Origin: Ranitomeya imitator
Taxonomy: Eukaryota
Direction of reading: 5' to 3'
Length of the DNA stretch: 64,000 bases
Assembly (NCBI RefSeq): GCF_032444005.1
Contig: NC_091285.1
Span: 11,532,001 to 11,596,000 of the forward strand
Shown piece by piece: positions 5,322 through 58,815 of this stretch. The notes below the pieces were generated by a model that was not told where the DNA came from, did not search any database, and worked only from the letters and a program-made list of their open reading frames with translations. The position numbers were made by a program, and so were the translations under genes. Numbering within the stretch: the first letter of the stretch is position 1; every line of letters begins with the position of its first letter.

Positions 5322-8300
5322 TTAGTAGAGACCCAGGGTCCTGAGCATCATCCTCTCCACGCCGGTCATCTGATAACCATTCTTGTTAGCTGGAAATGTA
5401 AAGCATGGCATTAGAAATGTGTAAATCCTGCGCTAAGCCTCGATATCTAGGACAGCGCGGTGTGAACCAATGTGGCCGACATTGCTGCTCCTACAGAGGT
5501 CACCACTTACATGTTCATCATGGAACGTCTGCCAATTAACTGCTAAGTTAGGAAGAATTCCCAGAATGCACTGAATTAAATATGACCCCGCGGGGGCGGC
5601 GTACAGTGGTGTGATGTCATCAGGAGGCGGAGCTTGTACCACAACTATATATCATCTAGACTACATCAGGTCTATATATATGACCGGAAGAGATTAATGT
5701 CTTACCGTATGCAGAGCTGCTGAATCCCCACCTGTAGAGGGAGAGACACAGGATTAGATACACAGCTCATCTGCAGTATCACACAGGATAGGATTAGATA
5801 CACAGCTCATCTGCTGTATCACACAGGATAGGATTAGATACACAGCTCATCTGCTGTATCACACAGGATAGGATTAGATACACAGCTCATCTGCTGTATC
5901 ACACAGGATAGGATTAGATACACAGCTCATCTGCTGTATCACACAGGATAGGATTAGATACACAGCTCATCTGCTGTATCACACAGGATAGGATTAGATA
6001 CACAGCTCATCTGCTGTATCACACAGGATAGGATTAGATACACAGCTCATCTGCTGTATCACACAGGATAGGATTAGATACACAGCTCATCTGCTGTATC
6101 ACACAGGATAGGATTAGATACACAGCTCATCTGCTGTATCACACAGGATAGGATTAGATACAGCAGCTCAGCAAGCCACAAGTCCTATACTAACCAGTCC
6201 CAGCATCCGTTGGGGTTGGACAAGTTGGACTTGGCCTGAGGATACAGGATGATGAAGTTGTTCAGATCGGCCACCTGGTTGTACCCGGTGTATCTGGCAT
6301 ATTTGTCACCAAGTTTTTCCCTGTAAAACAAAAAGAAATGTGTCTTGTAATTATTCATCATCTGCACCGAAAACTGCTGTGATACCACAACTCCCAGCAT
6401 CCCCTAAAGGGGATGTGTCATCAAAAATCTAACTATTGTTTAGATGATGTGATGTCACAGCTCACCTCCTCCTCCTGTACAATGACTGATAACACCGCTA
6501 TATACAGTAGATAACACAGGATCCACCATTCACAATAGATGATGTCACAGCTCACCTCCTCCTCCTGTACAATGACTGATAACACCTCTATATACAGTAG
6601 ATAACACAGGATCCACCATTCACAATAGGTGATGTCACAGCTCACCTCCTCCTCCTGTACAATGACTGATAACACCGCTATATACAGTAGATAACACAGG
6701 ATCCACCATTCACAATAGATGATGTCACAGCTCACCTCCTCCTCCTGTACAATGACTGATAACACCTCTATATACAGTAGATAACACAGGATCCACCATA
6801 CACAATAGGTGATATCACAGCTCACCTCCTCCTCCTGTACAATGACTGATAACGCCTCTATATACAGTAGATAACAGAGGATCCACCATTCACAATAGAT
6901 GATGTCACAGCTCACCTCCTCCTCCTGTACAATGACTGATAACGCCTCTATATACAGTAGATAACACAGGATCCACCATTCACAATAGGTGATATCACAG
7001 CTCACCTCCTCCTCCTGTACAATGACTGATAACGCCTCTATATACAGTAGATAACACAGGATCCACCATTCACAATAGGTGATGTCACAGCTCACCTCCT
7101 CCTCCTCCTATACAATCACTGATAACACCTCTACATACAGTAGATAACACAGGATCCACCATTCACAATAGGTGATGTCACAGCTCACCTCCTCCTCCTG
7201 TACAATGACTGATAACACCTCTATATACAGTAGATAACACAGGATCCACCATTCACAATAGGTGATATCACAACTCACCTCCTCCTCCTGTACAATGACT
7301 GACAACACCTCTATATACAGTAGATAACACAGGATCCACCATTCACAATAGGTGATGTCACAGCTCACCTCCTCCTCCTGTACAATGACTCATAACACCT
7401 CTATATACAGTAGATAACACAGGATCCACCATTCACAATAGGTGATGTCACAGCTCACCTCCTCCTCCTGTACAATGACTCATAACACCTCTATATACAG
7501 TAGATAACACAGGATCCACCATTCACAATAGGTGATGTCACAGCTCACCTCCTCCTCCTGTACAATGACTGATAACACTTCTATATACAGTAGATAACAC
7601 AGGATCCATCATTCACAATAGGTGATGTCACAGCTCACCTCCTCCTGTACAATGACTGATAACACCTCTATATACAGTAGATAACACAGGATAGGTGATG
7701 TCACAGCTCACCTCCTCCTCCTGTAATGACTGATAACTCCTCTATATACAGTAGGTGACATTGGATCCATCGTTCGGCATAGATGATCACAGCTCACCTC
7801 CTCCCCTTCCCTTCACAATCCCCTTTGCCCAGATTACAGTTTGCCCAGTTTATACTTGGATACAAACATGGGGTCTCCGTCAGTCTTTTGCTTCTAATGT
7901 CACAATGAATAACATGAAGTACGAGTCCAACAAATCCTAAAGTCAGGGCTGTTCTCACCTTCCTTGCAGGCAGCCGTGGAAGACAATATGGAGTTTGCAT
8001 TCTGCAAAAAAAAAATACAAATCACTTAGAAGAAAGAATGGTAAAAAAGCTCAAACATCCCTGGTTATGGTTTAGGGGCAGAGGGACACAACTTGACCCT
8101 CACTTGTGCTGACCCTCGTGCTTCTTGGATCGCGGTTGCAGGCAGGAACTTCTATAATCAGGGTCCATTCTTTCATGCTATGCCCAACTCATTTATTTAA
8201 CGTGATTTTATAAAAAATGAGAACTTAGAAAACTAGAAAGTAGACCCTCAACCCATCCTACTTGCCATTTTTTTTAATAGTTTTTCTCATAATTTCAACC

Positions 8301-11300
8301 CACATAAAACATCATATAGTATACAGCTTCCAAGATCGTCATTTAATACCAACATGGCTAGATGTTACCAGGGTCACTAAATACTGCCAAGGGTCATCAT
8401 GTCCTGTCCAAACTAGACCACGGGACAGAGACTGCCAAGACCACTACATACCACCAGGACCGCCAGAAACTGCCAATACCACCAGATACTGCCAAGACAA
8501 CCAGATATTATTGGGACCACCAGAAACTGCCCAACCCACTAGATACTACAAGAACCACCGGAGACTGCATAGACCAGATGCTTCCAAAACCACTAGATAC
8601 TACCACAACCACAAAATGCTTCCAAGACCACTAGATTATATCAGTACCACCAGAAACTGCCAAAACCACTAAATATTACTAGGACCACCAGATGTTTACA
8701 AGATCAATAAATACTACAGTGACCACCAGAAATTGCCAAGACCACTATATAGTACCACGACGACCTGATAATGCCAAGGCCAGTAGACATTAGAACTGCC
8801 AGCAGATAAAATCAGCACCACCAGAAATGACCAAGACCATTAGATCCTACCAGGACCGCTACATGCTTCCAAGACCAGTAGATACTACCAGGACCACTAG
8901 AAAATGACAAGACTTCTAAATACTACCAGGACCAACAGATGCTTCCAATACCACTAGATACTACAACAACCACTAGATACTTCCAGGTCTGCAAAGACCA
9001 GTAGATACTACCAGGACCACCAGAAACTGCCAAGACCTGTAGATACTACCAGGACCACCGAAAACTGCCAAGACCACTAGATACTACCAGGATCACAAGA
9101 TGTTGCCAAGATCAGTAGAATTTAGAATGACCATCAGATACTATTAGACTTTCAAAGACCATGACATAATGTCAAGGATATCATAAGCTACCATGTTCAA
9201 CAAAGATCACTTGATACTTGGTACCGTTAGGTCTACTAGACATAACATCAAACTCATACACTACCTGGATTAGGAGATGTTACCAGGATGACTAGAGAGT
9301 ACTAAGACCACCAGATACTAGAACAATGAGACAAAAACCTAGATCATCACATATAATCAGGCCCCCCAGGGGCATATGATACTATGTAGAATGCTATGTA
9401 CCATCAGTATAGTCAGCTGCTGTCAAGACTAGTAGAAACTACCAAGATCACCAGATACTATGAGGACTGTGAGAAGAAAACCAAGAACATCAAATACTAC
9501 CAGGACAACCAAATACTGTCCTAGGCTTCTGTCAGGACCACAATATTCCACCAGGACCTCTGGACAGTATCAGAGCTATAAGACACCACAATGCCCATAA
9601 GGTACTGCCAAAGCTATCAGATACTACCAGGACCATAGGCTAAAATGCCACAGGCTAAAACACCATGGTCTAAAACAATGACCAGAAGAAACTATTAGGA
9701 CAACCAGATACAACCAGGAACACAAACACTATCAGATACAACCAGGAGGAACAAATATTACAAGTAACATCAAGAAACACCAGGGTCAAAACAAGACATT
9801 TACATGTTCCCCACTATTCAAACCACCAGTCACTGTGTCATGGTGGTAATGAGCACACGTTCCCAACGCCGTGCTACTCTCTGTGTTTGCTGCTCTGTTC
9901 CTCACTGTGTCAGGCTGCCGCGCTGAGTCCGCATGCAGAACTCATTGTCTTGTTTTCCCTGTTTCTGACTTGACTTGTTTACCTGTTGCGTCTGACCTCT
10001 CCACTCCTTACCCCAACTTCGTATAGTGAACCCCTGCTGCCTGCCCCATTCTCTGAACGTCTGACTACGCTTCTGTATCACCGTTCTGTACCTCGTATAC
10101 CTGCTCTGAACCATGGGTCAGCTACTGCAGGTCCAGGGACTGCCCTGGAGTAATGATGACTACCTGCGGCAAAGCCTATCCTCACCACCAAAGGCTTTAA
10201 CAAAAACCAGGTAGTCGCTTAGTCATGCCACTTCAGAGTAAGTATGACCTGTGGCCCAGTGATTCCACACCCACCACCATCACATACTGCCACCAAAGTC
10301 AGTCACTTACGTGCTCCACTCTGGCATGATGAAGGAACATAGACATATCCAGCAGTGTCCATTCCGTAAGTTGAAGGAGCAGCAAGTTTAAAGAATTCAA
10401 CCTGGTCAAACAAGATCAGCTGCAAGACAAAAGACAGACCATGAGTTGAAGAATTCTGAAGAAGGTCATGAATAACCAACGTCTTTTAAGGTCTCTCAGA
10501 TATGGACCTGATGTACAGAGGCATTCCACCTATATGTATTAATGTAGCAGTAAGAGACAGAAGTAATTGTTGTTAGTAGTTGCTCTTAAAGGGGCTATAA
10601 GGTGTATCGTGTTTGCCTTGAAAAATTAGCAACTGTTTTTGGAAGAAGGCAACCATAAACATTGCCCACCACATGTGCTCCTCTCCACTTTTAGCCTCAT
10701 CAACCATTGAGCAGTGCAGAAACTATTCATGGAACTCATTGCTCTGCAGCCCGGATTTCTACGAAACTGGAAGAGTCCTTTTTTGTTATGAGTTAGAAGA
10801 GGGACTGACTTAATTTTGGCTACTAGTCTGGACTTCTATGGAGGAAGATCCCCTTTAATCAACAAAAAAAGTTCTGGAACAACCACAAAATTAGAAGGAT
10901 GGAGGTGGCCTCTTTTTCATAGATGGATTAGAAATCTCAACATCAAGGTTTTACAATTAAACCTGGGATAAACTAAACTTCCTGATAGCTAATCTAGGTA
11001 TCTTGGGCAGAGTTGTTCTCGAAATGCTAAGTCAGACACAATCGTTCAGATAGAACTTTTTACCTGTCCAGTGAATGCCGCTCCGCTGCTTGGTTTCTGT
11101 GTCAAGAAAAAGGTCAGAAATCTAAGTAACAGAGCTTTGTCTCAATCTAGACCTTCAAATCTTACAGAGATCGAAGAACTGCTCACCTCCAGCCCTCCTC
11201 CGTAGATATGATTGAGAGCCTCATAGGCCCCATTATAGTTACAGTTGTTGATGTAATCAAGGTTTGTTGACCCGCAGACCCCTCCGTAGCTGTCTGTGGG

Positions 11301-12675
11301 CTGTAAGCAACCACAAATACCAGAAATGACTACATTACTTATGAATGTTCAATAGTAATTAAATTAATCTTCTCCAAAAGGTAAATATAATGAATTCAAC
11401 CTGGAGTGTCCGTCGATAGCTTCCACCCAATGTCAACCCCCATTACCACAGAGATATAGGTGGATACGACTCTCACCATTCCATGCTGAGCCGCAACGTC
11501 GTACACAGTCTTGAGAGCTCCGGAACCGGTGATGTAGGATGCATAATATTCCTCCTGCTTTTTCACCACACCTAAAATAAACAGTAGTGGTTGTAGAACA
11601 AATGGGACCCACAGAAACCAATGGACACCCCTTTCAGTTCACTTGGCATCAACTTCAGATAAGGTTCCTCCACTTAGAAGTAGCTCCTCACATGCTGCTC
11701 CCATGAGCAACTATGCCGAAGGAAATACTCTAACTAAAAGTGGTGGTCAAGAACAGAAAAATCTGTCTGAAAATTTATAGAATACCCTATAAAATATACT
11801 ATAGACCCTTTATAGAACTTTGAGGGTCTACACATTGCCCATGCTAAAATTAAATGAACCAGCCCTGGTATCTTATCGAGGTTGATTGTGTATAGGCAGC
11901 CCTAAGACAATTAGGGGTTACCTCTTCCACTACAAGTAGATGATTGACTCCAATGGCGGACCTCCACGTGAATAGCAGATATTCCAGGGTATACACACAG
12001 CAAAAGTTGGTTACACATGGTTTGGTTGGGTCAAAGAAGACTAAAAATGGATCTATATTATTTTACTCACCTGGAACTACTACAGTATCACGTGTTCCAG
12101 AAAAGATGTACACTCTGCTGTTGGCGAGGTTGGACAAGGGGTCGAGGAGTCCACTGTTGGCGTAAGTTTGAGTCTTGGACTTCAATGTGGCAACGTTGAT
12201 GCTTGTGGGCAGTTTCATACAAGCATTAGTTGCAGTGAGCAAGTTTCCTTGTGCACAATAGTATGGTCCTATGGGGACATCGAAAGAGAAGGTATTGTCA
12301 GAAAGAACCTTACCTATATAATAGCACAACAGCGTGACGCTCCCTTTAAGGCTGATAAATAATTGAAGGAAATTCTTTGTACCTCCAGCAAAGAGGCCAG
12401 CTCCAATGACCCGTTTTGACTGGGCAACATGGAACTGGTTAGCCATGTAGGATCCCGAGGACAGTCCAGATACAGACAAAGCACTTTCGAGATTGTACTT
12501 GGCTGTCAAAATAAATATTAAGTTTAGGAAACGGTATTTAGAAGCAAAACCATTTCACTTCGGGTATTGAAATTGATTATTCCTTCCTTCTAAATACAGA
12601 CAAATATAACTTACCAAGCTTTGACTGTCCATAGCAGAGGCCAACCAGAGAGAGCAAGATGATGAAAGCCTTCAT
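5322..12675 (-). CDS. Secreted poly(3-hydroxybutyrate) depolymerase-like esterase, paralogue A (11 coding exons, 330 aa)
   Basis: Exons (minus): 12615-12675, 12383-12502, 12071-12268, 11477-11571, 11187-11300, 11064-11096, 10311-10419, 7959-8001, 6195-6320, 5706-5731, 5322-5389. All introns are GT-AG, phases are compatible, total 993 nt with no internal stop. Signal peptide MKAFIILLSLVGLCYG; SVSGLSSG (Ser35); FSGTRD (Asp121); AQHGMPTD (His156); LHIVFHGC; GYNQVADLNNFIILYPQA; NPNGCWDWWG. The motifs match, in order, those of fungal-type extracellular PHB depolymerase as I recall it (no database search run). Confidence 0.92.
5746..6170. repeat. 40-bp tandem repeat (acacaggataggattagatacacagctcatctgctgtatc), about 10.5 copies, in intron 9 of paralogue A
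   Basis: Near-perfect 40-bp periodicity. Confidence 0.97.
6445..7800. repeat. 90-bp tandem repeat, about 15 copies, in intron 8 of paralogue A
   Basis: gatgtcacagctcacctcc recurs every 90 bp (6541, 6631, 6721); produces the 30-aa repeating spurious ORF. Confidence 0.97.
8350..9800. repeat. Degenerate 19/38-bp minisatellite (ccagaaactgccaagacca-ctagatactaccaggacca) in intron 7 of paralogue A
   Basis: 38-bp period visible at 9003 and 9041, built from two related 19-mers; heavily diverged elsewhere. Confidence 0.85.
9836..10284 (+). mobile_element. Solo LTR (Gypsy-related) in intron 7 of paralogue A
   Basis: TG...CA ends and 5-bp TSD cactg/tactg. The 3' part (gggactgccctggag...cctatcctcacca...aaaaaccaggtagtc...ccacacccacc) matches the LTR at 16190-16345. 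Confidence 0.7.
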
Positions 12676-12733
12676 GTTTTCTGCCTTAGGATACTTTGAG
12701 GAGAAAGTCCTGACTAATGAAAGAGATATAGGG

Positions 12734-12740
12734 TTTTATA
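12734..12740 (-). promoter_or_regulatory. TATA box of paralogue A
   Basis: TATAAAA(CCC) about 60 nt upstream of the ATG; the same 10-mer sits upstream of paralogue B. Confidence 0.7.
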
Positions 12741-15700
12741 TAACGGTCAAAACAAGTCTCAACCTTGTCGCGATAAGGACCTGATTTGAAGGCCTTGAAA
12801 AACATCTGTGCGAACAGCTTTAGCTTTAAATATAGGTTCATTCTGATATAAGATTGAGGAAAGTAAACAAATAATCCATACTCATTAAAGGTACATTAAT
12901 CTTTTCTGTCAAGGAGTTGATAAAACAAATTCGAGAGCAAAGTGACTTTGTAGGTTGTTTAATCTGTTAAACTTTTCCAGTAAACATTTACAGTATGAAC
13001 TATTCCTTTTATATTATACAGTATAGCTACCTACTCAGCATAAAACTATAACAAAGGTTAAATTCTATTCCTAATTAGCAAACAGAGGATTTTTTATAAA
13101 GATATATCACAATTACAAAGTAGCTGGATTTGATATTTTGTTACTGTTTTGTATAAAAAGCAGAACAGGCATGTGGTATAATCCCATTGCGGTTCCATGT
13201 TAGTAATTCCTAACTTATACCTATCCATGATATCTAAAAGAGAAAAATGACAACTTTTCAACTCCTATCTTGGTGACACAATTATCTTGTTTGACTACAC
13301 TATTGAAATTTTGTTACAAATTTTTTTTAAATTTGTAATCAGGCACAATATCTGACATTCTTTAAGAGTTTTGATTTATAGTCTATGTAGCTCCTTGATT
13401 ACATTTTTCATGAGCTGTTCTATACAACACATGGTAACTGCTTAAACACCATAAAAACCCAACAAAAGATTTTAGCAAAATGTGATTTTACTCATAATCA
13501 GTAAAAAAGAGACCTGTTATAAAGGTAAATTTCACACATAAAATGTGCATTTTATTTATTTTTCTGTGATAGAGTAGGCATGTGGTTTGATCCCATTGCG
13601 GTTACCTTTAAGTACCTCAGTACTTATATCTGGACATAAGAAATCTCCAGCAATGAGTGAAATATACTTAATATTGACTGATCAATGTTCTTCATCATCT
13701 ACTTACCCTTCTGTGGCCTCCCGTATATATAGAGCTCTTCAAACTTCCTTTTATGCTAGCTGATTGACTCTATTGGTAATACAACACTCTATTAATACCT
13801 GCCCAACCTTGGATCTAAAAATACAATGCATTATATAGTGCATTTCTGTGTTACAATTTAACTGGTCCTGCTAATACACAGATAATTATCTGATCCCTTC
13901 CTTGTGAACTGATCCATATTCAATGTGCACCATTAGGTTGTTGTTGGATTTGAATTATGTTGGTGTCTTTATAAGAAGGATATATCAAGATCACCATTCT
14001 ATATAGTTTTCAGGTAGGTTCTAAAGAAAAACCTTATAGAGGGCCTCCTCCAAGTGCTCACGACTAAGATGGAAAAATATCCTTTCCTCAACCTTCTCTA
14101 TAATCACTTTTGTCAATTTTGTACTTTTTATGCTACATGGCTAAGTCCATGGCTATGGTGAGTTTAGGCATGCAATTGGAGAATTTATTCATTGGAGACC
14201 CACTAACTCACTCTAAAGCCTGGAACCTTTAGTGGAGATTGGAGAAATAATGGAGAATGATAAAGTTCCAGATTTACAATTTATTTTTTTCTGTCTTATG
14301 TGGTGGAGAAGTCAAAAACTTGAGCTCAGTATCCCACTAAGTGAAGAACATGCAATTTGCAACTCCATCACAACTGGTCCAATTGTGGTCCGGGCTGGAA
14401 GAGCGAACGAGGAGACTGTCTTTTCTAGCGAAGATGGAATGTCACTGCTGCAGCCAATTATTTGCCTCTGACTGGCTGCAGCGGTCACATAACATCCCTA
14501 ATAGATCAGAGGGGACATGTCAGCCTGCCTCCTTGGTCAGCCATGCTTAGAGCTCCATTCCCAAATGTTGAAAAAAACAAAAACAAACAAACACTAAAGA
14601 CTATTAACTAAATGTATCTCTCTCGTGAGGAGGTCAGCTGAAAATCACCTTAAATTTCCTCTTTAAAATTATATTAAAATTCAGATACATTTGAGACTTG
14701 GAACATCTTTGTTTTACATTATTTGTATTTGCAAATGTTTTCTATATTGAAAAAAAAAAATTAGAAAAGAAAAAAAATCTTCCCATGTGAACCATTCCAT
14801 AGAGAAACAAATACTGAGCAGGTGTAACAAGGCCACCATACATTACACCTTATCTGTAAATTACAGCCTTGATGGCCTCATTAATGAGATACCAACTGCA
14901 CACTTTTGATGTTTTATCTGCCTTCCAGTTAAATTTAAAGAAAAATATATGAAACTTGTGAGAAACAAGTTGCCGGTGAAAACTTCATGTAACGAGCTGC
15001 CGTGATCGGAGGATTGCCCTGATAATCTGACTGTGATTGGCCAAAGTCAGACAAACCCCATACGCGGCACAAACCCTTGTCCATAACTAATTGTCAATCT
15101 TGCCTAAATTTCTGCCATTATTTCCCTTTCCAGTGCATTTCTAGTTAGGAGATAACTTGCAGTCAGAGACCACTGATCCCAAGAACGGGGCTTTAAAATT
15201 CCTTGTCCAAGTGTACCCTTGACCCCTCATGTGCACCACGGCTTCGGGTCCGCTCATTCTTTATGGGACGGCTGTCACATCGGTGACTCGCACATGTCGT
15301 AAGTGCCACCCTACTCACTGTGTGTCATCGCCCTGCTCTTCCCATTTGCGGGCTGTCTCGCTGAGCTGCCTCTTGTAACATTTCCAGCATTTCCAGCAAT
15401 AAAATACTGCATCCTCCTGCTGCTGGTAAGTCTCCACCTGGCTATAGTGAGGCACGGCCACTTTCTGTAGGTATTTAACCTCATCGTGACAGAGGTGAGA
15501 TCTTCTGGTCTATTCTAAGGGTATGGTCTGGACCCTGAAGACACCAATTGCGTTATTCGAAAAAGTGTTACGCGTCTTTTACATATATTGTTTCATGGTA
15601 ATATATAACGTACAGAGTTAAACATAGGTTAGCTTTAGGGCATAAGGAAGTGACTATAGGGTAAGATAGACTTTGGCAAGCATTATAAGTGTAATAGGTT

Positions 15701-15983
15701 TAATGTATGTAAATGCAGGGACAGACATAGGTAAAGTTCTGGACTAGCCCATAGTGGCAGGGGAAAGGCCCAGTAAAACGGGACTGCTTCCTGATAGCAG
15801 ATCAGATAGGGATGTTCATTAACTAACCAAGGTCAAGTTCAAGGTTCTATGGGCTGATAGATAAAGCAAGAATCTATCATTCGGGGCAGTGGGAGGCCTT
15901 ACTAGAATCTCTTGAGGACATTCCTGCAACGTCTGGAGCTCAAGGCTCGGTATAGGTACTATGAAATCAGGGGACGATGGACG

Positions 15984-18900
15984 TGTAACCGCGTGAAAGG
16001 AAGGTAACATAGCCCGGGTGCTCTGCGGAACCGGACGGGAAGTATCTGAGGCTTGTACCTTGTACCTTTGTCTCTGACCTTCCTGTCAGCCACCTTGTAT
16101 ATTGTATTATTGTATATGGAGATGGCTGCTCCTAGTATGCACCTACACTAGCTTGGAAGTGCCGGTCAGTCCTTTGTCACCTGGCAGCCACTGCAGACCT
16201 GGGGACTGCCCTGGAGTGGTTCCTGGTGACTACCCGCGGCTAAGCCTATCCTCACCATCAGAGGCTCTTGTAAAAACCAGGTAGTCAGGCTCTCCAGGGT
16301 TTGCCCGGCCTGTGGCTCAGTGAGTCCACACCCACCAGTGTTACAGTTAGATCAGGCCATGGACAAATTGGGACCCAGAGATCACAAATCTTATGTGCAA
16401 GTACTGTATTGTAATAACTCTGCCGGCATCACTGCATGGCCTCCCATCCCTTACACACCAACTTACTCACTGCTCCAGGTCATGCTGTGACTTCTGTCTG
16501 CTGCCGGCTCCATGTTCTGTGTCTCTTGCTTTCTGCCTGCTCTCTGCATGCTTCCTAGCTGTGTGTATAGGGGGGCGGTGCCAGAACTCTCTGGCTCTTA
16601 TGGAATCGGGGTGCACCTGTCTAATGTGTCCCTGACCAATTACCAAGAGACCTCTAGTATTTAGGGCAGCTCCACGCTGTGGAACTTGCCTTGTAATGTG
16701 TTAACTCAGTGTCTTGCTACTGAGCTGCCCGGTTTTGCTCTGTGTTCCTCCTTCTCTGGAGGCTCTGCTCCTCGCTTTGCTTGGTTATTCTCTGTCTGCC
16801 CTCCAGGAGGCTGTATATCCTGGTCTCAGTGTCTTTGTTCTAGCCTTGCTTTGTACTTGTCTGTCCGCCTTCCAGGAGGCAGAATATCCTGGTCCCTGAG
16901 TCTTTATTCCTGTACCTTGTCTCGTACCATTACCTTGTCTGAACTCTGTCCTACCTCCGTCTCCTTGTCTGTGGTTTCTTTCCCTGCTGTGTCTTTCCTT
17001 GTGTCCTCATTCTTTGCCTGTGCTCCGCACTCTTGCGGCTCTGCCTGCTCAGTACTTTTGTGACTCTGCCTGTGCTCTGCACTCTTGCAGTCCTGCTTAT
17101 GCTCCGCACTCTTGTGTCTCTACCTGTTTCTCCATACACCATTCCTTACTATCTGTACCAGTACCTGCACCTGCTGTGTGAACAGGACACTACCTAATCC
17201 ATACACCACTCCCGCCCTGTGTCTCAGCCGTGTCTGCCTGCCCTGTGTCTCAGCCGTGTCTGCCTGCCCTGTGTCTCAGCCGTGGCTGCCTGCCTACTCG
17301 TCTGAGTTTTCCGTGCTCATCTGACAGTCATGCCAGTTGACCACACTCATCCTAGAGTTCCTGTTTCCCAAGTGGGATCAGCAGCCACAGCCAGACACCG
17401 CCCTGGAGTAGCACCTGGCAGCTGCCTGCCGCACAATCCTGACCTCACCATCAGAGGCTCCAGAGAAAACCAAGGCAGCTGTCCTAGTCACGCCACCTTC
17501 CAGGGTAGTCTGATTTGTGGCACAGTGGGGCCACAACCCCTCTGGCTCATGCCTACCAGTCAGGGCATGAGTGTGACATGTATGAGGAGGTGTGCGCTCA
17601 ACGTGGGCATCAGGACCAGATTATGCAAAATGCCGCCATGTATACCCAGCCCTCCACCTCTTCATCTGGCCAATCCTCCTCAGGACTGTCAGTCGTGAAC
17701 TGCCTAGAGACTCAGTTCCTGATGGAACCGCCAAGCTCCAGCTTCCACTTAGGTCTCACTATAATGGAGATTCCAGGAAGAGCTGCGGCTTCATTAATCA
17801 GTGTATGATCCACTTCACACTCACATCTTTCCTTCAGACCAGACCAAGATAGCGTTTATGGTCTTTCCGCTGTCTGAATAAGCCCTGGCCTGGGCAAACC
17901 CCATTTGGGAGCATGATGGGTCAGAGACTCATGACTTTGGGAGGTTCTTGGAGATGCTCCGAGCGGCATTCGTGGTTTCCGACCGCATCTCCTCAACTTC
18001 TTCATCCCTTTTGTCTCTAAGGCAGAGCATAGATACCTTGGCCCAGTAGGTCTTATGCTTCCATACCTTGGCAGTGGAGCAGGCTTGGAATGAACAAGCC
18101 TTGGTGGTGACCTTCTGGCAGAGCCTGTCCTTTCGTATAAAGGACGAGTTGGCAGGCAGAAATCTACCATCCTCTCTAGATGCTCTTATTCACCTGGCCG
18201 CTAGGATAGATCTGTTTCCATGAGCTGGCTCTGAAACAAGCTTCGGTTTCTCCTTGTGCCAGAAGACTGGCACATAGAGAACTTATGCATGTACTGTGGA
18301 GGCTTGAGACATTTTGTTTTCCAGTGCCCTGTGACACCTAGGGTTGGCCGGAGTTGACAGAGTTACCCTGGCATGGAAGGAGAGGTCTATCTCTGTGTCT
18401 GCACATCTGGATTCCAGCTCTGCTGGCAACTTCATCCATCAGGATCTGGTCCATCGACTTCAGCTCCCTATACAACAGGTGCTGATCCCCCCCATTGACA
18501 GACAAATCCTGGCAGAGATTTTTCGATTCATCACTCTGCAAGTCACACTACGGATTGGAGCCCTGCATGATGAAAAAAAAACATTTCTCTCCCAATCTAC
18601 CTACCCATAGAAGACGTGTCTGTCAGGTTTTGCAGCGCCTATGGGAGAACGATCTGTTTGAAGAGTTATCCAATGTGTCTTCGAAAGACCCTCCCTGCCT
18701 TTCCTCGGCTACACGGTTTCCACCCAGAGCCTCGAGATAAACCAGGACAAGGTTTCTGCGGTTCTCTGCTAGCCTCATCCCCAAGGCTTGTGTGCAATCC
18801 AGCAGCTCATGGGTTTCGCCAACTGATATAGACAATTAATCTTGCACTTCTCATCCCTCGTGGCTCTCATCTTCGCCTTAACCAAGAAGGGGGCTAATGT

Positions 18901-20040
18901 CAGAGTCTGGCTCGCAGTTGAAACAGGCCTTCGCTAGAGTTCCAGCTTTGCACCACCCCGATTCCAACAAGCAGTTTCTCTTGGAGGTAGATGCCTCTTC
19001 TATCAATGCTGGGGCAGTGCTCCTGCAAAGATCTTCTTTGGGGAAGTCGTCTGTCTTTTTCTCCAAAACATTTTCATCGGCTGAGCAAAATTATACCATT
19101 GGGATCGTAAGCTTCTGGCCATTAATGATGGTGGCAACATCTACTGGAGAGCGTATACACGGACCATAAAAATCTGACGTTCCTGCAGTCCACCCTGCGA
19201 TTGAATCCTTGCCAAACCATGTAGGCACATTTCTTTGATTTTTTTGTAACTTTAAAGTACACTTCTGTCCTGCAGAGAAGAACGTCAAAGCAAATGGTCT
19301 GTCTCGATTTTTTGAGGTGACCGATTCTGTGGAGGAGCCTCAGCACATCATTGACATGGCCAGGATTATTGAAACAACCCTGATCGTTTTAAAAGACATT
19401 CCTCTGGGAAAGACCTTTGTCCCTACTACTAGGAGAATGCGAATTCTGTGCTGGGGATACAAAGTTAGCTGGTCATATGGGCATACGCAAGTCCACCGAG
19501 CACAGCGTGCCAGATACAAGTCCTCCAGGGGGACAAGCCTGCTAGTCTCTTTCAGCCTCTGTCGGTTCCTTCTGCTCCCTGGAAAAACATAGCCATGGAC
19601 TTCATCATGGACCTGCCTGTCTCTGGAGGTTGCAATACCCTCTGGGTCATGGTGGATCAGTTCTCGAAGATGGCTCACTTCTTTCCACTTGTCGGCCTTC
19701 CCATCGCACCTAAGCTCGCCATGCTTTTCTTCCTCTCCACATAGTCTCTGATCATGGAATTCATTTAACTTCAAAAGAGCAGAGAATTCTTTGCAAGCTG
19801 CTGAATATACACCGGGATTTTTGCTCTTCGTACCAACCACGATGCAACGGGAAAGTGGAACAGGTTAAACAGATTCTTGAAAATGACCTTCACCACTTTA
19901 CTCTGCCCATCAGGAGGACTCTGTACAACTACTCCTCTGGGTGAAGTTTTCCTACAACAACCACGTTGGAGAGTCTTCCACAGTTTCTCAATTCTTCATT
20001 GTATACTCCCAGCATCCATCCTCAAACCAAGCACCCTCTT
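15984..20040 (+). mobile_element. Degenerate Ty3/Gypsy LTR retrotransposon remnant (5' LTR, gag, protease, RNase H and integrase fragments; RT largely deleted)
   Basis: LTR ends at ...gtgttaca 16345 (its start is uncertain). Gag FHTLAVEQAWNEQAL...IKDELAGR near 18060; CCHC knuckle CMYCGGLRHFVFQCP near 18285; protease HLDSSSAGNFI; RNase H FLLEVDAS...FSSAEQNY near 18970-19100; integrase AMDFIMDLP...VMVDQFSKMAHF near 19590-19680. Many stops and frameshifts. Confidence 0.85.
16410..17578 (+). mobile_element. Solo LTR nested in the 5' region of the older Gypsy element
   Basis: Starts tgtaat, ends gtgaca, perfect 5-bp TSD tgtat (16405-16409 and 17579-17583). Contains internal short tandem repeats. 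Confidence 0.8.
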
Positions 20041-20419
20041 CTATGTCTATATCCCAGTAGTTACCGGGGGGCAGAGGGTGTGGTCGCCCTGGGCCCCGAA
20101 CTAAGAGGAGCCCACCCAGAGCTATGCTACCCTTAACTGTATCAGCGTGCACAGCGCGCCAATACAATTAATTCCCGAGGCAAAGCAGGGAGACACGATC
20201 TCCCTGCACTGCCGCTCTCTGTTCTGTAGACCACAGGATGCTATAAGCCTGCGATCTACCGAATGGCCGAGACGCCAACGCACGTGCAGAACGTCAAAGT
20301 CCCAATATGGTGACGTTATCGCACAACGCGGGGACTCTGACGTTCTGTGTGTGTCAGTGCCATGACAGCGTGCAAGTTCGCCCGAACCTTGTGAGCTGAG
20401 TCATTGGGATCTTGAATCT

Positions 20420-22420
20420 ATAATTCTGCCCCCTATGTACAATAATATAACTACTATAATACTGCCCCTGTGTACAAGAATATAACTACTATAATACTGC
20501 TCCTATGTACAAGAATATAACTACTATAATACTGCTCCTATATACAAGAATATAACTACTATAATACTGCCCCTATGTACAAGAATATAACTACTATAAT
20601 ACTGCCCCTATGTACAAGAATATAACTACTATAATACTGCTCCTATGTACAAGAATATAACTACTATAATACTGCTCCTATGTACAAGAATATAACTACT
20701 ATAATACTGCCCCCTATGTACAAGAATATAACTACTATAATACTGCCCCTATGTACAAGAATATAACTACTATAATACTGCCCCTATGTGCAAGAATATA
20801 ATTACTATAATGCTGCCCCTATGTACAAGAACATAATTACTAAATTACTGCCCCTATGTACAAGAATATAACTACTATAATACTGCTCCTATATGCAAGA
20901 ATATAACTACTATAATACTGCCCCTATGTACAAGAATATAACTACTATAATACTGCCCCTATGTACAAGAATATAACTACTATAATACTGCCCCTATGTA
21001 CAAGAATATAACTACTATAATACTGCTCCTATGTACAAGAATATAACTACTATAATACTGCCCCTATGTGCAAGAATATAACTACTATAATACTGCTCCT
21101 ATGTGCAAGAATATAACTACTATAATACTGCCCCTATGTACAAGAATATAACTACTATAATACTGTCCCTATGTACAAGAATATAACTACTATAATAATG
21201 CCCCTATGTACAAGAATATAACTACTATAATACTGCCCCCTGTGTACAAGAATATAACTACTATAATACTGCCCCTATGTACAAGAATATAACTACTATA
21301 ATACTGCTCCTCCTATGTACAAGAATATAACTACTATAATACTGCTCCTATGTACAAGAATATAACTACTATAATACTGCTCCTATGTACAAGAATATAA
21401 CTACTATAATACTTCCCCTATGTACAAGAATATAACTACTATAATACTGCCCCTATATACAAGAATATAACTACTATAATACTGCCCGTGTACAAGAATA
21501 TAAGTACTACAATACTGCCTCTACGTACAAGAATATAACTACTATAATACTGCCCCTACGTACAAGAATATAACTACTATAATACTGCCCCTACATACAA
21601 GAATATAACTACTATAATACTGCCCCTATTTACAAGAATATAACTACTATAATACTGCCCCTATGTACAAGAATATAACTACTATAATACTGCTCCTATG
21701 TACAAGAATATTACTACTATAATACTGCCTCCTATGTACAAGAATATAATTACTATAATACTGCCCCTATGTACAAGAATATAACTACTATAATACTGCT
21801 CCTATGTACAGGAATATAACTACTATAATACTGCCCCATGTACAAGAATATAACTACTATAATACTGCCCCCTATGTACAAGAATATAACTACTATAATA
21901 CTGCTCCTATGTACAAAATATAACTACTATAATACTGCCCCCTATGTACAGAATATAACTACTATAATACCGCTCCTATGTACAAGAATATAACTACTAT
22001 AATACCGCCCCTATGTACAAGAATATAACTACTATAATATTGTCCCCTATGTATAGGAATATAACTACTATAATACTGCCCCATGTACAAGAATATAACT
22101 ACTATAATACTGCCCCTATGTACAAGAATATAACTACTATAATACTGCTCCTATATACAAGAATATAACTACTATAATACTGCCCCTATGTACAAGAATA
22201 TAACTACTATAATACTGCCCCTATGTACAACAATATAACTACTATAATACTGCCCCTATGTACAAGAATATAACTACTATAATACTGCTCCTATATACAA
22301 GAATATAACTACTATAATACTGCCCCCTATGTATAGGAATATAACTACTATAATACTGCCCCCTATGTATAGGAATATAACTGCTATAATACTGCCCCTA
22401 TGTGCAGGAATATAACATTT
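20420..22420. repeat. 35-bp minisatellite (tgcccctatgtacaagaatataactactataatac), about 57 copies
   Basis: Direct periodicity of 34-37 bp. Confidence 0.98.
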
Positions 22421-22806
22421 ACAATAAGGTGACACAAATCTTGTTGTTGCTTCCATTTTATGAATAACTCGGAATAAATTAGAATTTGAAGATTTTTATT
22501 TTGCAATGTGCAATGTTAAGTAAAGTGCGTAAAATTAAGATCCAAGCTCCTTATTACAGACGTAGGAGGGTTGTGGATGAAGAATATGCAGTAAACATTA
22601 TTACAGGAAAATTCACCCATAAATTTACAGAGATAATGAAGGAAACCAAAGAAAATTAAAAGAAAAAAAAATTGTTAAAAAAATGTAAAAAAATTTGATA
22701 AAGTTACAAAAGTTTCTTGAAACCAGAAGCTTTGTCTCCGTTGGGAGGAATGGACAGATGAGCGATTCACCAATATAATAAAATGACCTTAATGTGAAAC
22801 TACGGA

Positions 22807-22812
22807 TTTATT
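22807..22812 (-). terminator. Putative polyadenylation signal of paralogue B
   Basis: Minus-strand AATAAA 70 nt past the stop; a second one near 22495-22500. Confidence 0.45.
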
Positions 22813-22881
22813 ATGATCAGATGACATGGTATCTTGGCCGGGGGTCTTCTCTGTAATGGGGGTAGTAACGACGGCGATCCT

Positions 22882-37424
<14,543 letters not shown>

Positions 37425-37453
37425 GTTCGGTGATGAATCCGCTCAGACACGGG

Positions 37454-37460
37454 TTTTATA
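37454..37460 (-). promoter_or_regulatory. TATA box of paralogue B
   Basis: TATAAAA(CCC) 30 nt upstream of the ATG, identical to the paralogue A motif. Confidence 0.65.
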
Positions 37461-37939
37461 TTCTCGCACAGACGAGCTGTAATCTCTGTAACCAGGTGTT
37501 TACGGGACCATGAGAAAAGCGCGAGCGGAGCAGCTCTCCGGCTTCAGTAATCATTAATCACCGATAACCTTCATTATATCACACAATCCCACCATGCTGA
37601 CTGTTTCCATACATCAAACCCCCCCCCCCATACTGCTGAGCAAACCTGCTCTACATCTGGAGAAGGAGGCAAGGAAGACAACGAAACGTGGAAGAGCTGA
37701 GCATCGAATACTGAAAATATGTACAGGGGCAAGGACTCCGCCAAAAGCCTCAGGGGCCAACTGGAGGCCTAAGCCGTCCTCCCTCCTTACAAGACTTCAT
37801 AGTTCCTCATGGGCGGAGTCTCAAAGATCATGTGCAGTCAGCACACCAATAGAAAAAAAAGGGAGAAATTTAGGAACTCTTCTATGCAAATATTTGATTT
37901 GTTATCCAAAGAGGATTACATGGGAATAGTTTATAGTTA

Positions 37940-39666: not shown

Positions 39667-58815
<19,149 letters not shown>

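Follow-up and report, generated by a model that had tools for sequence, protein, structure and literature searches.

An old tandem pair of predicted polyhydroxyalkanoate depolymerase genes in the poison frog Ranitomeya imitator

Do two neighboring genes of a poison frog encode enzymes that break down bacterial storage polyesters, and have the two come to do different work? Until 2026, the depolymerization of polyhydroxyalkanoates (PHAs) was credited to bacteria and fungi only. We analyzed 64,000 nucleotides of Ranitomeya imitator contig NC_091285.1 (the window), which hold two intact, adjoining PHA depolymerase (PHAD) paralogues, A and B, arranged head-to-tail on the minus strand. Our preferred explanation, to which we assign a probability of roughly 85%, is that A and B are functional, single-domain, type-2 extracellular short-chain-length PHA/poly(3-hydroxybutyrate) (PHB) depolymerases that stem from a tandem duplication early in the history of frogs and have both been kept since under strong purifying selection. 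The locus comprises two intact, conserved vertebrate PHAD genes, of which B is demonstrably expressed. Because one gene has an ancestral-like loop next to the substrate-recognizing tryptophan and the other a derived one, the two can be compared as a natural experiment.

Gene models, transcripts and upstream sequences

Both genes are intact (Table 1). Their ten introns are all GT-AG and lie at matching positions, with the same phases after exons 1-10 (1,1,1,0,0,0,1,2,2,1), and neither reading frame contains an internal stop. The exon-finding method regenerated the NCBI models P0208 and P0218 exactly, and the translation of A equals RefSeq XP_069617980.1 (P0328) at every residue. A preliminary description of this DNA had proposed that the genes share their orientation and all 10 intron positions and phases, are both intact, and are about 70% identical (230/330). 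The gene models bear this out, with open frames, canonical splice sites and all exons present, and realignment gives exactly 230/330 identical aligned columns with 2 gaps. The residue differences that it had quoted (KSNLS/RTIAT, FSSSA/YTGLV and GLSSGS/GISSGA) are each present in the translations.

Table 1. Genes, exons, repeats and other features located in the window.
Feature	Position	Strand	Remark
Gene A, coding range	5322-12675	-	11 exons, 330 aa; A-type PHB/PHA depolymerase (predicted)
A exon 1	12615-12675	-	ATG and hydrophobic signal-peptide-like N-terminus MKAFIILLSLVGLCYG, read from sequence
A exon 2	12383-12502	-	lipase box G-L-S35-S-G, nucleophile Ser
A exon 3	12071-12268	-	catalytic Asp121 (GTRD) at its end
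A exon 4	11477-11571	-	catalytic His156 (AAQHGM)
A exon 5	11187-11300	-	
A exon 6	11064-11096	-	33 nt
A exon 7	10311-10419	-	
A exon 8	7959-8001	-	oxyanion-hole motif H-G-C254
A exon 9	6195-6320	-	KSN-L-S (sole N-X-S sequon of protein A) and NPNGCWDW
A exon 10	5706-5731	-	26 nt; completes W300 (codon split TG/G across exons 9/10), then W301, G-FSSSA-Y
A exon 11	5322-5389	-	stop codon
Gene B, coding range	22882-37424	-	11 exons, 328 aa; B-type PHB/PHA depolymerase (predicted)
B exon 1	37364-37424	-	ATG, signal-peptide-like start; RNA joint 35511/37363
B exon 2	35393-35512	-	G-I-S35-S-G
B exon 3	35083-35280	-	Asp121
B exon 4	32944-33035	-	His155
B exon 5	32442-32552	-	
B exon 6	32291-32323	-	
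B exon 7	31997-32105	-	
B exon 8	31611-31653	-	H-G-C252
B exon 9	31014-31139	-	RNA contig with loose end at 31610 continues into exon 9
B exon 10	23154-23179	-	completes W298 (split codon TG/G), then W-G-YTGLV-Y
B exon 11	22882-22949	-	stop codon
TATAAAACCC upstream of A	12731-12740	-	65 nt before ATG
TATAAAACCC upstream of B	37451-37460	-	36 nt before ATG; inside RNA contig of run X4
Minisatellite, 40-bp x 10.5	5750-6170	.	A intron 9
Minisatellite, 90-bp x 14	6449-7692	.	A intron 8
Minisatellite, 41-bp x 45	33157-34970	.	B intron 3
Tc1/mariner-type transposase remnant (HTH_Tnp_Tc3_2)	36443-37189	-	B intron 1
Assembly gap (N run)	26016-26185	.	inside B intron 9 (23180-31013), A/T-rich non-coding sequence

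The introns are repeat-rich, but not in the way first described. Their "heavy TE invasion" consists mostly of minisatellite arrays, together with one Tc1-like remnant that is embedded in a high-copy repeat spanning roughly 35880-37280. The assembly gap touches no exon and no exon of B is missing; the length of the gap-bearing intron 9 (7834 nt) is an estimate only. A tblastn search with 16 family proteins found no further family copies in the window outside A and B. Its sole extra match (2806-2913) corresponds to the last 36 residues of GenBank model CAJ0960722.1, which looks mis-built, since its translation takes in the 90-bp intron repeat as well.

B is expressed and correctly spliced across exons 1-8. 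RNA contigs from three runs carry these junctions exactly as modeled and, in addition, read on into exon 9. The preliminary description would have been contradicted by a silent copy. B is clearly not silent, while the RNA evidence for A consists of word matches: the runs contain 13-15% of the words of the A stretch, for which repeats are another possible source.

A short TATA motif recurs upstream of the genes. TATAAAACCC, listed earlier as a shared motif, occurs exactly twice in the window, on the minus strand ahead of each gene. It is indeed common to both genes and conserved across species: the TATAAAACC box is kept upstream of 6/6 genes examined from four species. One B transcript, however, passes straight through it.

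Family, fold and predicted catalysis

Profile and structure comparisons place A and B among the type-2 PHADs. The NCBIfam model NF050059 (e_dPHAscl_type2; curated cut-off 280 bits) scores A, as P0328, at 361.7 bits, with the alignment spanning positions 9-302 of the 305 in the model, and scores P0218, the orthologue standing in for window B (86% identical, 283/328), at 345.1 bits. This whole-model score settles the family assignment. In a phmmer comparison, residues 23-318 align with the Penicillium funiculosum enzyme 2D80 at E 2.3e-52 and 35% identity. The AlphaFold model of the A-type orthologue P0208 (pLDDT 94.5) matches the circularly permuted alpha/beta-hydrolase fold of 2D80 and superposes on 2D81 (TM 0.87/0.90, rmsd 1.9 A), whereas the second-ranked PDB entry has TM < 0.3. 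The Pfam profile PF10503 (Esterase_PHB), in turn, falls short of its gathering cut-off of 23 bits (A, 22.0; P0218, 20.6 bits) because the domain order is circularly permuted; its alignment is limited to profile positions 14-82 of 219, and Pfam searches with single exons returned PF10503 matches below threshold only. By their sequences, A and B are related to PF10503 and do not qualify as members.

The residues needed for catalysis are in place. The predicted triads (S35, D121 and H156 in A; S35, D121 and H155 in B) align with Ser39/Asp121/His155 of 2D80, the triad assigned in the fungal enzyme (PMC5445757). The H-G-C254 (A) and H-G-C252 (B) motifs align with Cys250 and lie downstream of the His, which is the type-2 order, defined by an oxyanion-hole motif after the triad (PMC13642032). 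W300 (A) and W298 (B) align with fungal Trp307, which has been reported to recognize the ester bond (PMC9878459). The Ser, Asp, His, H-G-C and C-W-D-W-W residues are conserved in A, B and the other aligned frog sequences where the columns are present, except that a single Trp is replaced by F or I in three sequences. By eye, both N-termini read as M, two to three polar residues, a hydrophobic stretch and G-L-C-x-G followed by Q-S; the P0208 model has a low-confidence helix at residues 2-12.

The frog proteins belong with the metazoan PHADs: their nearest matches outside amphibians come from lamprey, molluscs, hemichordates and echinoderms (45-54% identity), and in a tree built from animal sequences the order lamprey, salamanders, frogs agrees with the species tree.

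Each predicted protein combines a signal-peptide-like N-terminus with a single catalytic domain, for which homology suggests the following mechanism. Ser35 of G-x-S-x-G, activated by His156/155 and Asp121, would attack the ester bond of PHB; the backbone amides of Ser36 and the H-G-C Cys would stabilize the oxyanion, and the second Trp of C-W-D-W would hold the neighboring ester group. Cleavage would release 3-hydroxybutyrate as monomers and oligomers, which the animal could oxidize, and the most likely role would be the digestion of PHB granules of ingested bacteria. PHB as the putative substrate is suggested by 35% identity to the fungal enzyme and ~45-50% to annotated animal members. If the enzymes are active, tadpoles or frogs could obtain the ketone body 3-hydroxybutyrate straight from bacterial PHB, and the proteins would be animal-derived candidates for bioplastic hydrolysis.

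Age of the pair and meaning of its differences

The pair is old. Anuran sequences form an A-type and a B-type clade, each with pipoids, Bombina and neobatrachians. AU tests, on groups picked after the tree was seen, reject a single clade of all pipoid copies (p 0.0011) and one of all hyloid copies (p 0.00016); on these phylogenies, the A/B split is older than the pipoid-neobatrachian divergence. A tandem duplication on the anuran stem, after the salamander split, is probable and is favored rather than proven. The tests are borderline for the Bombina pair (p 0.064) and the Rhinophrynus pair (p 0.054), and we therefore claim no firm stem-anuran date. Among vertebrates, our database searches found the family limited to lamprey and amphibians.

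Both copies have been constrained. Against orthologous DNA from Leptodactylus, Engystomops and Dendropsophus loci, A has a dN/dS of 0.10-0.12 and B one of 0.06-0.12, far from the value near 1 that would have undermined the preliminary claim of an old duplication under purifying selection. That claim is upheld by the clades, the AU tests and dN/dS of ~0.1 in both lineages. Between A and B, dS is saturated, so the pair is not a recent or collapsed copy.

Several readings could explain why both copies persist. It is quite possible, although we would put it at somewhat below even odds, that A and B form a redundant or dosage pair doing the same job in the same cells, with differences that represent neutral drift in tolerant surface loops. 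The catalytic and motif residues are all identical, the differences occur in every exon (21-56%), and RNA runs X2, X4 and X5 contain words of both stretches. Copy number also varies among frogs, with two B copies in Leptodactylus, two A copies in Phyllobates and three genes in Rana; these lineage-specific extras fit a simple dosage benefit as well as they fit divided functions. Redundancy sits poorly, however, with the fact that almost every frog lineage sampled has kept both types for a long time, and with upstream sequences that have diverged into two conserved types.

Those same observations suggest, more tentatively, that the pair is subfunctionalized, with both enzymes active and split by polyester substrate or by tissue or life stage, and with the loops flanking the Trp causing any substrate difference. 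Retention for so long at dN/dS ~0.1 is rarely explained by redundancy, and the conserved upstream blocks of A-type genes differ from those of B-type genes. The preliminary description had placed the A/B differences next to a conserved motif and just after the nucleophile, and proposed that they plausibly shape the substrate cleft. Two five-residue difference blocks do flank the Trp307 equivalents, W300 and W298 (the fungal residue is that of PMC9878459), and each block is paralogue-specific among neobatrachians. Their clustering, however, is not significant: at least 2 runs of 5 differences arose in 509/5000 shuffles (10%), and the densest difference block lies at residues 80-100, away from the motif. 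Only 3 sites (S/T99, V/L124 and S/G305) are diagnostic for A versus B across all frogs, so the 100 differences in the window are mostly not ancient diagnostic changes.

In A-type proteins, the sole N-X-S sequon (N290) immediately precedes the motif, whereas B-types of hyloids lack such a sequon. One of the diagnostic sites, three residues after W-W-G, shows a G-to-S change across all frogs for which the A state is derived. On the other side, "YTG" is simply the ancestral state, and "KSN" is still present in early-branching B copies. The variable segments fall in a long coil region of the confident P0208 model, and they may plausibly shape the cleft. Since these loops lie on either side of the Trp307 equivalent, different substrates for A and B are likewise plausible. 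In bacteria, multiple PHAD isoforms go with different PHA types (PMC13642032), which is consistent with such a split. Taking both sides together, we regard subfunctionalization as possible but rather unlikely.

A bolder version, which we consider speculative and doubtful, is that A and B represent a vertebrate enzyme specialization on bacterial storage polyesters, divided by substrate, step or life stage. A would then be glycosylated at N290 by the Trp and carry a derived G-F-S-S loop, while B would keep the ancestral G-Y-T-G loop. The two might act on polymer surface versus soluble oligomers, or on PHB versus polyesters with longer side chains, or might serve a biofilm- and detritus-feeding tadpole and an insect-eating adult, respectively. 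If this were true, gene retention would be tied to larval feeding ecology, since lamprey and amphibians have microbe-rich larval diets.

Adult poison frogs eat arthropods, not detritus. Such a diet would suit enzymes that had kept the fold and catalytic machinery but shifted to a non-PHA substrate, such as dietary lipids, waxes, plant or arthropod polyesters, or small acetyl esters. Across animal PHADs, conservation of the binding site is partial, at 8-42% identity (PMC13642032), and the frog enzymes lack the 11-residue insert of the fungal enzyme, as a shifted substrate might lead one to expect. We nevertheless judge such a shift improbable. The score on an equivalog-type NCBIfam model is far over its cut-off, the Trp307 equivalent, the oxyanion Cys and the entire crevice-forming loop motif are conserved, and 4/4 distant animal PHADs tested degraded PHB (PMC13642032).

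That one copy is dead or silent, or that assembly or contamination has produced the pair as an artefact, is very improbable and largely refuted: the gap inside B and the failure of a protein database search to find a B-type protein in R. imitator (or in R. variabilis or Phyllobates) are outweighed by intact frames with canonical splice sites, B splicing in three RNA runs, the identity of A with its RefSeq model, the saturated dS, tandem orthologous pairs in other frogs, and introns full of frog repeats. Horizontal transfer or contamination was rejected separately, because the genes have introns and tandem orthologues in other frogs, and their phylogeny agrees with that of the species. Two functional tandem paralogues, both retained since an early-frog duplication, remain our preferred explanation.

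Comparison with known systems

The closest known systems are other animal PHADs. These enzymes, chordate members among them, were published in 2026 by Zeidler et al. (Nat Ecol Evol; PMC13642032), with PHB degradation by members from an oligochaete, a sponge, an earthworm and a springtail. The Olavius algarvensis PHAD has 333 aa, with S42, D127, H167 and C259 (PMC13642032). The frog pair resembles the animal PHADs of that study in size, single type-2 domain, triad, oxyanion Cys and motif order, has a signal-peptide-like start where those enzymes have a signal peptide, and shows ~45-50% identity to annotated members from molluscs, echinoderms and hemichordates of the kind surveyed there. The main text of that paper neither assays nor discusses a vertebrate member, although its tree includes chordates; it gives no account of a tandem pair in frogs, of how old such a pair is or of the selection acting on it.

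The frog enzymes also align over their whole length with the Penicillium funiculosum PHB depolymerase (2D80/2D81; Hisano et al. 2006). Both have a single domain without a separate substrate-binding domain. The frog enzymes differ in lacking the fungal 11-residue insert, which precedes S-N-P-N-G-C-W-D-W, and in their C-terminal helix, and they are encoded by animal genes with 10 introns.

Bacterial type-2 dPHAscl depolymerases (NF050059) are matched by the frog proteins from end to end of the profile and likewise have the lipase box before the oxyanion-hole histidine motif. Many bacterial clusters in an atlas search, however, are ~400-510 aa long with fibronectin type III, whereas the frog proteins are the catalytic domain alone. 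The type-1-order esterases of PF10503 and TIGR01840 (e.g., 8DAJ) share the H-G-C ... N-P-N-G-C-W-D-W block with the frog proteins, but the order is permuted, about 70 residues align, and both curated cut-offs are missed.

The enzyme family and gene A are already known and annotated. The product of A is named "poly(3-hydroxybutyrate) depolymerase-like" in RefSeq, an automatic name; like-named automatic models exist in frogs, salamanders and lamprey, and both types are annotated in many frogs. A literature search on the frog LOC numbers and on PHB depolymerase with tadpole or Xenopus found nothing relevant. Our analysis therefore discovers no new system, but confirms and refines an existing annotation. 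What is new here is the age of the duplication, the dN/dS of both lineages, the splicing of B in RNA and the conservation of the TATAAAACC box.

Two tandem genes and transcripts of B

The window carries two co-linear sets of coding pieces, both on the minus strand. They were located by six-frame comparison of the window halves and by tblastn with frog homologues, and splice sites were set by eye and by script. The resulting PHB/PHA depolymerase genes, A and B (table), have GT-AG borders in 20/20 introns. Intron phases are identical, which bears out the shared intron positions and phases claimed in the preliminary description, and its hand count of 230 identical residues among 330 aligned positions agrees exactly with the computed alignment. 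A and B differ in length by one codon in each of exons 4 and 5.

The translation of A is identical to XP_069617980.1, the RefSeq protein of Ranitomeya imitator, whose coding range likewise covers 7354 nt. The same exon-finding routine recreated the Engystomops A-type protein P0208 and the Leptodactylus B-type protein P0218 residue for residue. The approach is thus validated by exact matches to three NCBI models. A GenBank model from R. imitator, CAJ0960722.1 (P0230), treats the 90-bp minisatellite in a gene A intron as coding sequence, and its C-terminal 36 residues are encoded at 2806-2913, downstream of the real stop of A. It looks like a mis-built model; the RefSeq protein instead agrees with ours.

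Features of the window, by position (x, number of repeat copies)
Feature	Position	Strand	Structure or location
Gene A	12675..5322	-	11 exons, 330 aa
Gene B	37424..22882	-	11 exons, 328 aa
Exon lengths, A/B (nt)			61, 120, 198, 95/92, 114/111, 33, 109, 43, 126, 26, 68
40-bp x 10.5 array	5750-6170		A intron 9
90-bp x 14 array	6449-7692		gene A intron
38/76-bp arrays			gene A introns
35-bp x 57 array	20418-22416		between A and B
Long spurious ORFs	23142-24530	both	produced by 15-bp array
15-bp x 54 array	23458-24263		begins 280 nt from B exon 10
N run	26016-26185		B intron 9 (23180-31013)
388-bp x 7.6 array	27077-30043		B intron 9
41-bp x 45 array	33157-34970		B intron 3
21-bp array			gene B introns
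High-copy repeat	35880-37280		contains the Tc1-like ORF
Tc1-like HTH ORF	36443-37189		B intron 1
Stop-free stretch	40388-43299		upstream of B
Stop-free stretch	47246-48157	-	upstream of B

The sole N run in the window is flanked on both sides by A/T-rich low-complexity sequence. It lies inside intron 9 of B, and reading-frame continuity is therefore unaffected; the true length of this intron is uncertain. B has the full set of exons seen in A and in every orthologue. The link between exons 1-9 and exons 10-11 across the gap, strictly uncertain, is supported because the latter two encode B-type sequence (G-Y-T-G-L-V-Y-A-T-K-N, as in the Anomaloglossus B protein) and because a contig from RNA run X5, with a loose end at 31610, extends beyond exon 8 into exon 9.

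B is transcribed and correctly spliced. RNA contigs were placed on 31480-37479, the region of B exons 1-8. Those from runs X5, X4 and X2 have joints at 31652|31996, 32105|32291, 32323|32442, 32552|32944, 33032|35080, 35278|35391 and 35511|37363, which, given the cut offsets, are exactly the modelled boundaries from exon 8 to exon 1. Every joint has CT..AC ends, equivalent to GT..AG on the minus strand. Words of both gene stretches are present in RNA-type runs, although word shares alone are weak proof because the introns of both genes carry high-copy repeats; run X6 covers B repeats only. Silence of one copy, which the preliminary description gave as counter-evidence to its reading, thus does not apply to B, and putative expression of A rests on the RefSeq model and the RNA word share. 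At 37428, 4 nt before the ATG of B, an X4 contig has T where the window has C (+ strand), probably a polymorphism.

An old duplication under constraint

Frog A-type and B-type proteins form separate clades. The maximum-likelihood tree (41 proteins) places frogs in one clade (100/100), sister to salamanders and divided into B-type (95/90) and A-type (86/80) groups; both include Bombina, Rhinophrynus, Xenopus and neobatrachians. The window's A protein stands beside Anomaloglossus A, and its B protein beside Anomaloglossus B. Constraining all pipoid copies together cost 46 log-likelihood units (AU p 0.0011) and all hyloid copies 137 units (AU p 0.00016); the AU test was borderline for the pairs of Bombina (p 0.064) and Rhinophrynus (p 0.054) alone. 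Because of the tree and these tests, the duplication is certainly older than the pipoid-neobatrachian split, and it probably occurred on the anuran stem, which frog time trees place roughly 200 million years ago or earlier.

Frogs differ in copy number, and some copies are later than the A/B split. Leptodactylus fuscus has two complete tandem B-type genes (locus L001, 10001-17507 and 23628-29144), both with 11 exons and 328 aa, identical at 285/328 residues with dS ~0.5-0.6; the first is P0218. Phyllobates terribilis has a pair of 330-aa A-type proteins (P0326, P0330), and Rana temporaria three consecutively numbered genes, one B-type and two A-type (P0269, P0283, P0284). In the searches done, Ascaphus, Spea and Pelobates each yielded a single type.

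Both copies are under strong constraint. From coding sequences of three frog loci, A gave pairwise dN/dS of 0.10-0.12 with the A genes of Engystomops and Dendropsophus, and B gave 0.06-0.12 with the Leptodactylus B pair, dS being 0.6-1.0; between A and B, dS was saturated (>3). Neither copy therefore approaches the value near 1 that would mark decay. Comparison with Engystomops, Dendropsophus and Leptodactylus gave no relaxed constraint in A or B, and branch lengths in the 41-protein tree no acceleration; any relaxation would be recent, within poison frogs, which are closer than these relatives. The evolutionary half of the earlier interpretation, an old duplication under purifying selection, is thus supported by the tree, the AU tests and low dN/dS in both copies.

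Introns, neighbours and upstream regions

The introns had been described as heavily invaded by transposable elements. Their repeats are mostly minisatellites, with one clear transposon relic, a Tc1/mariner helix-turn-helix sequence in B intron 1. In each of the four runs, RNA word depth in the surrounding high-copy repeat ranges from hundreds to tens of thousands, against 7-23 in gene exons. The 40-bp and 41-bp units are related (…TATCTAATCCTATC.TGTGTGATACAG…), and their arrays, in introns of A and B that are not homologous, run in opposite directions. The stop-free stretches upstream of B may be importin gene exons; the window's stop-free pieces there gave no Pfam match. Importin (IBN_N, Cse1, TPR_IPO11) lies upstream of B in Leptodactylus, TMTC downstream of A in Engystomops, and CAPRIN and ZCCHC3 near B in Anomaloglossus.

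A motif noted earlier as common to both genes, TATAAAACCC, is indeed present upstream of both ATGs, at 65 nt in A and 36 nt in B (two occurrences in the window, 0.14 expected). When 200 nt upstream were aligned, A-T-A-T-A-A-A-A-(C/G)-C was found in 6/6 genes of four species, at -60 to -70; in window B it is nearer the ATG because ~33 nt are absent downstream of it. Its occurrence in all six genes marks it as an ancient, conserved TATA-box-like element common to both paralogue types.

An X4 contig (954 nt) spans 37363-37479 unbroken and has 128 more letters on its 5' side. Since it runs through the motif, at least one B transcript starts at least 183 nt upstream of the ATG and includes it. N-terminally extended NCBI models from Anomaloglossus and R. 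variabilis hint at an upstream start for A too. Either an extra upstream start exists, or the TATA-like box is not the main promoter.

Upstream of this box, blocks are conserved within each type and differ between types (window 37480-37620 and 12741-12870, both minus strand, and upstream regions of frog loci L001, L002 and L003). B-type genes share GGTGATTAAT(G/C)ATTA and CATGGTCC.GTAAACACCTGG, presumably recalling an HNF1 site and a forkhead core, respectively; A-type genes share TTTTCAAGGCCTTCA, which we take to resemble an NR5A2/LRH-1 site.

Catalytic residues, variable blocks and animal relatives

A and B belong to the extracellular short-chain-length polyhydroxyalkanoate depolymerases with a type 2 catalytic domain (NCBIfam NF050059), with end-to-end matches scoring 361.7 bits (A) and 345.1 bits (orthologue of B) at a cut-off of 280. 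By itself, the longest stop-free piece was enough to match the Penicillium funiculosum PHB depolymerase 2D80, and a full-length A-type orthologue aligned with it over residues 23-318 (E 2.3e-52). Pfam PF10503 fell just under its cut-off, only the H-G-C ... C-W-D-W block aligning, as the permuted order predicts. The AlphaFold2 model of P0208 (pLDDT 94.5, pTM 0.92) superposes on the fungal structure 2D81 (TM 0.87/0.90, rmsd 1.9 A), and the second-best PDB entry stays at TM <0.3.

Fungal residues were mapped by counting along the 2D80 alignment (SEQRES index + 20 = published numbering). The triad and oxyanion-hole residues (PMC5445757) Ser39, Asp121, His155 and Cys250 correspond in A to S35, D121, H156 and C254, and in B to S35, D121, H155 and C252. 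Trp307, the recogniser of the ester bond (PMC9878459), is the second Trp of C-W-D-W (W300 in A, W298 in B). These residues are retained in A, B and the other aligned frog, salamander and lamprey sequences wherever columns are present, except for a single Trp to Phe or Ile change in three frog sequences and an Ambystoma model that diverges after C-W-D. Read by eye only, both N-termini appear signal-peptide-like. In their mature part, B-type proteins contain a ninth cysteine (…T-E-T-C-A-S…; exon 3, 35083-35280), hence an odd cysteine count, at a site where A-type has Y-A-N.

The preliminary description had proposed that A/B differences cluster beside C-W-D-W (KSNLS vs RTIAT before, FSSSA vs YTGLV after) and after the nucleophile. 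The blocks are real and flank the Trp307 equivalent, but their clustering is not significant: two runs of five differences were reached in 10% of shuffles. Residues 285-312 are confident coil throughout the P0208 model. Polarisation against salamanders, lamprey and invertebrates makes G-Y-T-G the ancestral form following W-W, and G-F-S-S a derived form of the A lineage. Before the motif, A has K-S-N in common with B copies that branch early, and neobatrachian B is where R-T-I-A-T or R-S-I-L-T originated. An additional Ser following the lipase box is for the most part specific to A. K-S-N-[LMF]-S forms an N-X-S sequon, the sole one in the R. imitator, Engystomops and Dendropsophus proteins of A type, and is absent from window B and both Leptodactylus B-type proteins. 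It is reasonable that such blocks would shape the substrate cleft, and that substrates may differ. A strong claim is weakened by the shuffles, by there being only three A/B diagnostic sites across all frogs, and by the densest difference block lying at residues 80-100.

The family is already known, and gene A is already annotated in RefSeq. A representative search returned 1487 clusters; relatives named 'poly(3-hydroxybutyrate) depolymerase-like' come from molluscs, annelids, crustaceans, echinoderms, hemichordates, a sponge, lamprey, salamanders and many frogs. Vertebrate matches in these database searches, which are no census, were from lamprey and amphibians only, suggestive of a restriction to these groups. 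Zeidler et al. 2026 describe this very family in animals (PMC13642032), from 66 species in nine phyla including Chordata; the main text is silent on frogs and the tandem pair, and the enzymes assayed include none from vertebrates. These animal depolymerases have the type-2 domain order, a triad and oxyanion hole conserved relative to 2D81, and signal peptides in ~75% of cases; those of an oligochaete, sponge, earthworm and springtail degrade PHB and PHB/PHV to 3-hydroxybutyrate (PMC13642032).
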